Notes under the pieces: generated by a model
The model's input: the letters and a program-made list of their open reading frames with translations, nothing else
Told to the model about the DNA's origin: nothing
Databases searched by the model: none
Shown: piece after piece, positions 43,181 through 43,262 of the stretch
Numbering within the stretch: position 1 is the first letter of the stretch
Layout: each line of letters starts with the position of its first letter
Made by a program: the position numbers and the translations under genes
Sequence record: OR699282.2
Reading direction: 5' to 3' (one strand)
Length of the DNA: 64,000 nucleotides

Positions 43181-43262
43181 CCGGGCGTATCTCAACGGTC
43201 TTCTAAATCGTCGTTAATCGAGTAACTGGAGTATGCAGGTTCGAGTCCTGTCGCCTGGGCCA
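43181..43262 (+). tRNA. atypical tRNA-Arg(TCT)-like RNA lacking a D-arm
   Basis: CCGGGCG/CGCCTGG, only 7 nt before ACGGT-CTTCTAA-ATCGT, extra arm GTTA-ATCGAG-TAAC, T arm GCAGG-TTCGAGT-CCTGT, G73, CCA. Confidence 0.75.

Follow-up and report, generated by a model that had tools for sequence, protein, structure and literature searches.

To our knowledge, few features in biology vary as little as the order of the arms in the tRNA cloverleaf, and the natural exceptions known to us consist either of the loss of an arm, as in mitochondria, or of a change in stem length, as in tRNA-Sec and allo-tRNAs. In an ordinary tRNA, nucleotides 8-9 are followed by the D-stem strand 10-13, the D-loop 14-21, the second D-stem strand 22-25, nucleotide 26, the anticodon arm, the variable loop, nucleotide 48 and the T arm. 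Folding itself tolerates altered strand connectivity, as seen from the permuted tRNA genes of Cyanidioschyzon merolae and from circularly permuted tRNAs made in the laboratory. In the C. merolae genes the segment for the 3' half precedes that for the 5' half, and a circular intermediate restores the normal order.

Two further groups of natural tRNAs depart from the cloverleaf. The D-arm-lacking animal mitochondrial tRNAs, e.g. nematode mt-tRNA-Ser(UCU) (PMC7609411), have no hairpin between the acceptor and anticodon stems and are missed or down-scored by standard tRNA finders; in them the D-stem and G18G19 are truly absent, and the shortened, flexible molecules depend on adapted partner proteins. 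Allo-tRNAs and other bacterial and phage tRNAs with 8/4 or 9/3 helices (PMC5389517) are supported by covariation, are partly of phage origin and were mined from sequence data; the lengths of their acceptor and T stems are altered, the order of their D and anticodon elements is not.

The element analysed here is an 82-base rewired tRNA-Arg gene at 43181-43262 (+) of the window, i.e. the whole 64,000-nt stretch of sequence record OR699282.2, in which all features given below lie on the + strand. Like the mitochondrial tRNAs, it has no hairpin between the acceptor and anticodon stems and is missed or scored low by the standard finders; unlike them, it has a 3-bp equivalent of the D-stem, a conserved UGGA that retains the GG-A of a D-loop, a full T arm and a full length of 81-82 nt, and it must suit ordinary bacterial machinery. 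The acceptor 5' and 3' strands stand at its ends in normal order, in contrast to the C. merolae type; the internal block alone appears permuted, and the mature RNA would keep this order. Unlike the allo-tRNAs, it would thus differ from the cloverleaf in the order of the D and anticodon elements. We found no account of such an arrangement in the full-text literature or in reviews of non-canonical tRNAs; as most subscription journals lay outside this search, an earlier description may exist. Within the literature searched, an internally permuted core that is specific to arginine and to phages would be unprecedented among tRNAs.

Results

The window comes from a jumbo coliphage of the Asteriusvirus type with a genome of 373 kb, and its tested region is 100% identical to Escherichia phage BAU.Micro_ELP-22 and to PBECO4 (BLAST). 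In the acceptor stem, the 5' strand CCGGGCG (43181-43187) and the 3' strand CGCCUGG (43252-43258) form 7 bp, one of them G-U, and the 3' strand continues into the discriminator G73 (43259) and an encoded CCA (43260-43262). The anticodon arm ACGGU-CUUCUAA-AUCGU (43195-43211) has a 5-bp stem and a 7-nt loop with the anticodon UCU at 43202-43204, U33, C35, U36 and a purine, A37. A T arm, GCAGG-UUCGAGU-CCUGU (43235-43251), with a 5-bp stem and a UUCRA-type 7-nt loop, was also recovered in the Rfam alignment. The gap between the acceptor and anticodon stems consists of UAUCUCA only (43188-43194) and begins with the connector U8 A9 U (43188-43190), which is invariant in 65/65 copies and unconstrained by any search pattern. 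Where a canonical tRNA has the D-arm hairpin between nucleotides 9 and 26, there are just 5 nt, and 23 nt (43212-43234) separate the anticodon stem from the T stem. The initial annotation had described these parts and gaps in the same way. It had also placed the element 4 nt downstream of a tRNA-Ser, and the canonical tRNA-Ser(UGA) at 43087-43176 (ARAGORN; Rfam 60.1 bits), the upstream partner on the same probable transcript, indeed ends there. A putative sigma-70-like promoter, GGGACA-16-TATAAT with a TG extension (43049-43076), was found by consensus scan in front of both genes.

Standard tools barely recognise the gene. ARAGORN made no call on 43181-43262, and the Rfam tRNA model (RF00005) scored it at 29.3 bits, just above the gathering score of 29, in an alignment that deletes the D-arm (15 model positions). 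Public records label the gene ‘tRNA’ or ‘tRNA-OTHER’, most of them leaving it unannotated or as ‘tRNA-OTHER’. A covariance model built from 65 homologues, which the initial annotation had proposed as a check, cleanly sets the family apart: the window copy scores 95.9 bits and the family 81-102, whereas ordinary tRNAs reach at most 37.

Homologues are numerous. A 94-nt query matched 683 phage records in BLAST, at least 242 of these over >=80% of the query length, and the element was found in Asteriusvirus, Felixounavirus, Vequintavirinae (rV5-like phages and Mydovirus), a 110-kb Klebsiella phage and Streptomyces phages. A further ~95 loci, in uncultivated phage contigs of 4.6-500 kb, came from two pattern scans of IMG/VR. 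The element-bearing loci analysed for gene content (n = 97) contain a median of 6 ordinary tRNA genes each, and only 2 of the ARAGORN calls of tRNA-Arg(UCU) among them turned out to be separate canonical genes. No copy of the rewired tRNA-Arg was found in 5,426 complete E. coli genomes; across 185,579 species, each represented by one genome, it occurs in 4 MAG contigs only, inside phage-like tRNA clusters. It is therefore conserved, widespread among unrelated phages, and restricted to phages.

Covariation was counted on an alignment of 65 distinct copies (alignment A2). With the structure that we propose, 94.7% of the cells of this alignment are paired, and the covariation score is 0.792 compared with 0.197 for shuffled alignments and <=0.162 when the partners are slid. 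In the acceptor stem all 7 pairs are changed on both sides, with 99.3% of cells paired; all five pairs of the anticodon stem covary, and 4/5 pairs of the T stem are changed on both sides. A fourth helix covaries as well. It is formed by C-x-y (43191-43193; columns 11-13) and y'-x'-G (43220-43222; columns 40-42), CUC and GAG in the window, and is paired in 65/65 copies. Its first pair is an invariant C-G, columns 12-41 hold UA 37, GC 16 and AU 12, and columns 13-40 hold CG 51, GC 8 and UA 6, so that the two variable pairs change on both sides in 28 and 14 sequences, respectively. Eight Watson-Crick versions (CUC/GAG, CGC/GCG, CAC/GUG, CAG/CUG, CAU/AUG, CGG/CCG, CUU/AAG and CGU/ACG) are spread across 47 different acceptor stems, and a ninth, CCC/GGG, occurs in the MAG copy L200. 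In an unbiased mutual-information scan the variable pairs of this helix come 5th and 12th when all column pairs are ranked, and the first 12 places are all held by pairs of the proposed structure. Since the columns of the new helix were N in every search pattern, its covariation is no artefact of ascertainment. The initial annotation had regarded a lack of homologues with compensatory changes as the mark of a decayed tRNA; both the homologues and the changes exist.

A fourth pair of the new helix, between columns 14 and 39 (A43194 and the last base of the linker), was considered and rejected: with A.C 36, C.A 11, C-G 6, A-U 5 and U.G 4, a standard pair is formed in 25% of the sequences only, the two columns being associated nonetheless.

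The secondary structure suggested initially for the 23-nt gap did not stand up to the alignment. In the pairing of UAUCUCA with UGGAGUA, columns 12, 13 and 14 change in 28, 8 and 23 sequences while the partner UGGAGUA is invariant, and the pair 11-50 forms in no sequence (n = 65). The GUUA/UAAC hairpin shows zero double changes and several unpaired cases (n = 65). Both complementarities do occur in the window sequence, but they are not a conserved structure. Folding programs, for their part, do not return the new helix: RNAalifold on the family gave the three canonical arms only, as a helix of only 3 bp is beyond energy-based prediction, and the minimum free energy fold of the single sequence differs from the covariation structure and is no better than that of shuffled sequences (z = -0.38). 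We also moved columns 40-53 between columns 9 and 10 in each copy. ARAGORN called tRNA-Arg in 65/65 rearranged copies and in 0/65 copies in native order; however, a shuffled block gave 513/650 calls and a block swapped between helix types 65/65. The controls being nearly as good, this test shows canonical spacing only and provides no evidence of a D-arm.

The anticodon arm lies between the two strands of the new helix, after which comes the D-loop-like segment UAAnUGGAGUAU. The anticodon stem is connected to the 3' strand of the helix by the linker CGUUAAUC (43212-43219), for which the family consensus is C-R/U-U-Y-A-A-n-n. Given the covariation, CUC (43191-43193) may be regarded as the equivalent of D-stem nucleotides 23-25, and GAG (43220-43222) as that of 10-12. 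The segment that comes next in the window, UAACUGGAGUAU (43223-43234), is proposed to supply U13, A14, A15, C16, U17, G18 and G19 (43228-43229), A20 (43230) and, further on, A21 (43233) and U48 (43234). The third U of the connector (43190) would then be the equivalent of position 22, opposite U43223 (position 13), and A43194, which joins the 5' strand of the new helix to the anticodon stem, that of position 26. With these assignments the nucleotides of the canonical core, i.e. U8, A14, the A15-U48 Levitt pair, G18G19, A21 and the arginine identity base A20, would all be present and invariant. Even divergent variants retain UAA(n)UGGA and the terminal A-U, while the length of the stretch after GGA varies.

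On the best reading of these data, the block equivalent to nucleotides 10-21, a strand of the D-stem together with the loop, has been relocated to the 3' side of the anticodon arm. The order would run from 8-9 to the 22-25 equivalent (U-CUC), 26 (A), the anticodon arm and the linker, and from there to the 10-13 equivalent (GAG-U), the D-loop equivalent AACUGGAGUA, U48 and the T arm, so that three connections would be altered: 9 to 22, 43 through the linker to 10, and 21 to 48. The polarity of the strands relative to the anticodon stem and the elbow would be the same as in a normal tRNA. The helix could stack on the anticodon stem to give ~10 layers (U.U, three Watson-Crick pairs, the layer of columns 14-39 and five anticodon-stem pairs), which equals the count of the canonical D-stem, 26.44 and anticodon stem, and the GG of the relocated loop could still reach the T-loop. 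With the D-strands paired and stacked and the GG at the T-loop, the RNA could plausibly take up an L-shape whose outer surface is the usual one. The initial annotation had called the RNA D-armless; given the covarying 3-bp equivalent of the D-stem and the D-loop-like segment with its GG-A, it is better described as having these parts in a permuted order. The equivalents of the tertiary contacts (U8-A14, A15-U48, G18G19 with the T-loop, and A21) give no covariation signal since their columns are invariant, and the invariance of the D-loop-like columns is partly due to ascertainment, as they were fixed in both search patterns.

The same functional tRNA-Arg could in principle adopt another fold, in which U8-A9-U10 pairs with G-U-A (43231-43233) to give a long bulged anticodon arm. 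The GG segment would form an 8-nt bulge and the molecule a three-way junction like that of the D-arm-lacking mitochondrial tRNAs, with no mimic of the canonical core. The complementarity of UAU and GUA is invariant in 65/65 copies (pairs 8-53, 9-52 and 10-51), and the divergent variants, too, have an R-U-R triplet after GG; on the other hand, invariant columns leave these pairs without covariation, and R-U-R triplets are common by chance. Moreover, such an arm would have ~12 stacked layers rather than 10, whereas UAA(n)UGGA...A-U matches canonical nucleotides 13-21 and 48 one for one. We therefore regard this fold as improbable and prefer the permuted core.

In a short-linker subclass only 3 nt lead from the anticodon stem to the helix (L095:2689-2766, anticodon ACG, and L206:1765-1842, anticodon UCU). 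The helix is compensated between them (CUC/GAG against CGG/CCG), UAAUUGGA...A-U is kept, and the length after GGA varies, as does the variable part of a real D-loop.

A few individual copies deserve mention. Beside a CCU copy on contig L067 there is a second, divergent UCU copy (13348-13429; 56 bits) in which the D-helix is weak (GC/GC plus mismatches) and the D-loop-like segment is longer; a duplicate in decay and a third subclass are both conceivable. At L021 10443-10552, and likewise in L023, L054 and L056, all from uncultivated phages, complementary leader and trailer sequences add 2-4 bp to the acceptor stem and CCA is not encoded, which suggests that the processing route of these copies differs from that of the enteric-phage copies. 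In Klebsiella phage vB_KpnM_KB57 (L003), ARAGORN reports two ‘tRNA-???’ genes with 2-nt anticodons (1063-1137 and 2739-2808) that may be further non-canonical tRNAs beside the rewired tRNA-Arg. In LR597663.1 (L001/L205), all tRNA genes are annotated on the strand opposite to that indicated by ARAGORN and the alignments.

Every copy of the element has an arginine anticodon with an invariant C35: UCU in 62 of the 65 aligned copies, CCU in 2 and UCG in 1, the short-linker variants adding ACG and UCU. A structure-descriptor search of 1.8 Mb of loci found the same architecture with arginine anticodons only and none with a non-arginine one. The discriminator is G in 33 copies, A in 29, U in 2 and C in 1, thus a purine in 62/65, and 44/65 copies encode CCA. 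The identity set of bacterial tRNA-Arg consists of A20, C35, U/G36 and A/G73 (PMC9976931). C35 with U or G at 36 and an A or G discriminator are found in the family, and the A after GG (43230), which would occupy the position-20 pocket, is invariant in all copies and variants. The initial annotation had been concerned that ArgRS uses A20 of the D-loop; this concern would then fall away, as an A follows GG in the relocated loop.

The slot occupied by the gene was compared with that in slurp01, a phage of the same species. There, an ordinary 77-nt tRNA-Arg(UCU) lies in the identical slot, 4 nt after tRNA-Ser. The promoter at 43049-43076 is conserved in slurp01, and the promoter, tRNA-Ser and downstream flank are ~97% identical between the two phages, the tRNA body alone being replaced. 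The canonical slurp01 allele is present at 100% identity in ten jumbo coliphages (BLAST), while PBECO4, BF17, A4 and the phage of the window fall outside this set and carry the rewired allele. Judged from sequence comparison, this natural swap of canonical and rewired genes is the strongest evidence of function. The canonical phage tRNA-Arg(UCU), that of T5 or of the slurp01/G17 Asteriusvirus allele, has the same anticodon loop as the rewired tRNA, the T arm and acceptor 3' strand of T5-like phage tRNA-Arg are ~89-92% identical to it over 37 nt, and the slurp01 D-loop AAUUGGAUA differs from the relocated AAYUGGAGUA by one base. In contrast to the canonical tRNA-Arg(UCU), the rewired RNA, 81-82 nt long, has the block 10-21 on the 3' rather than the 5' side of the anticodon arm and an 8-nt linker in place of the variable loop.

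Felixounavirus VpaE1_ev78 offers a second comparison. It has 26 ordinary tRNAs for all 20 amino acids, with Arg represented by ACG only, so that the rewired gene would be its sole decoder of AGA and AGG. In the ORFs of the window, which has 33% GC, AGA accounts for 24% of Arg codons and 9.0 per 1000 codons, compared with ~2 per 1000 in E. coli.

The surroundings of the gene have features of their own. Five paralogous ORFs of 54-60 aa starting with MTHEEW(M/I) are located among the tRNA genes (41523-41702, 41781-41957, 42300-42482, 43288-43452 and 43449-43613), and all match phrog_10970, a family of unknown function. Near-consensus sigma-70-type promoters (11/12 matches) precede successive units of small ORFs and tRNAs at 43625-43652, 44034-44061, 44232-44260, 44413-44441 and 45185-45213, and the tRNA region resembles a series of short units transcribed early. 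Two tRNA-Gly(UCC) genes are present (41985-42057 and 44071-44146), the first of which scores 41.7 bits, has a mismatched pair in the anticodon stem and is missed at the default filters of Rfam.

Discussion

From these results, the element may be understood as a functional phage tRNA-Arg(UCU) that decodes AGA and has an internally permuted core, a reading to which we assign a probability of roughly 0.75. The rewired tRNA reading AGA that had been suggested initially is supported as the most likely of the roles considered, by the retention of arginine anticodons and by the canonical tRNA-Arg(UCU) in the sister slot. The nuclease-resistant replacement and the decoy that had been offered beside it are speculative. 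The gene would be co-transcribed with tRNA-Ser from the promoter at ~43049-43076, excised by the tRNA-processing enzymes of the host, and charged by host ArgRS through A20, C35, U36 and G73. It would thereby supply a decoder of AGA to an AT-rich phage that uses this codon about four times more than E. coli does. Equivalence to an ordinary tRNA in three dimensions, processing, charging and decoding are what we infer for this RNA. As to its origin, the permuted order would result from circular permutation of the internal segment 10-47 at the 21/22 junction, possibly by tandem duplication followed by partial deletion.

Instead of decoding, a tRNA-like RNA of this kind might serve as a decoy or sponge for a nuclease that targets tRNA-Arg or for a defence sensor, or it might be a regulatory RNA. 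Phage tRNAs can counter defences that target tRNAs (e.g. PMC11555353), and an odd core could block some interactions. Several properties of the family argue against such a role: the element exchanges with a canonical tRNA-Arg(UCU) at one locus, its anticodon drifts only within the arginine box with C35 fixed, it keeps the 7/5 acceptor-T helix, an A/G discriminator and usually an encoded CCA, and in a phage tRNA set that is complete in other respects no other gene reads AGA/AGG. A non-decoding role thus appears quite unlikely, still more so than the other fold discussed above. Finally, a decayed pseudogene or a chance tRNA-like sequence, as the silence of ARAGORN, the marginal Rfam score and the missing or ‘tRNA-OTHER’ annotation of most genome records might indicate, is rejected with near certainty by homologues conserved from coliphages to Streptomyces phages, by compensatory changes in every stem, by invariant loop positions and by the scores of the covariance model.

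Returning to the decoding tRNA with a permuted core, a more speculative question is whether the rewiring is an adaptation. ArgRS, EF-Tu, RNase P and the ribosome would still be satisfied, while the RNA would be a poor substrate for a factor that reads the core of normal tRNA-Arg; possible factors of this sort are a host nuclease, a modification enzyme, a defence sensor and a phage-encoded tRNA-degrading activity. We put this forward tentatively and consider it rather doubtful.

A full-length tRNA that has all its parts in another wiring would demonstrate that another strand topology, too, can lead to the L-shape, and the RNA described here seems to function with the ordinary ArgRS, EF-Tu, RNase P and ribosomes of bacteria. 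As gene finders miss or mislabel the rewired RNA, many phage genomes seem to be without an AGA decoder, which affects tRNA counts and studies of codon usage. The rewired tRNA also offers tRNA engineers a scaffold of natural origin, and with it one can ask, in a concrete case, whether phage tRNAs escape host defences by structural means that go beyond changes in the anticodon loop. If the core is indeed an adaptation, it would represent a tRNA topology of natural origin, immune-evasive and in part orthogonal, which horizontal transfer has carried into unrelated lytic phages.
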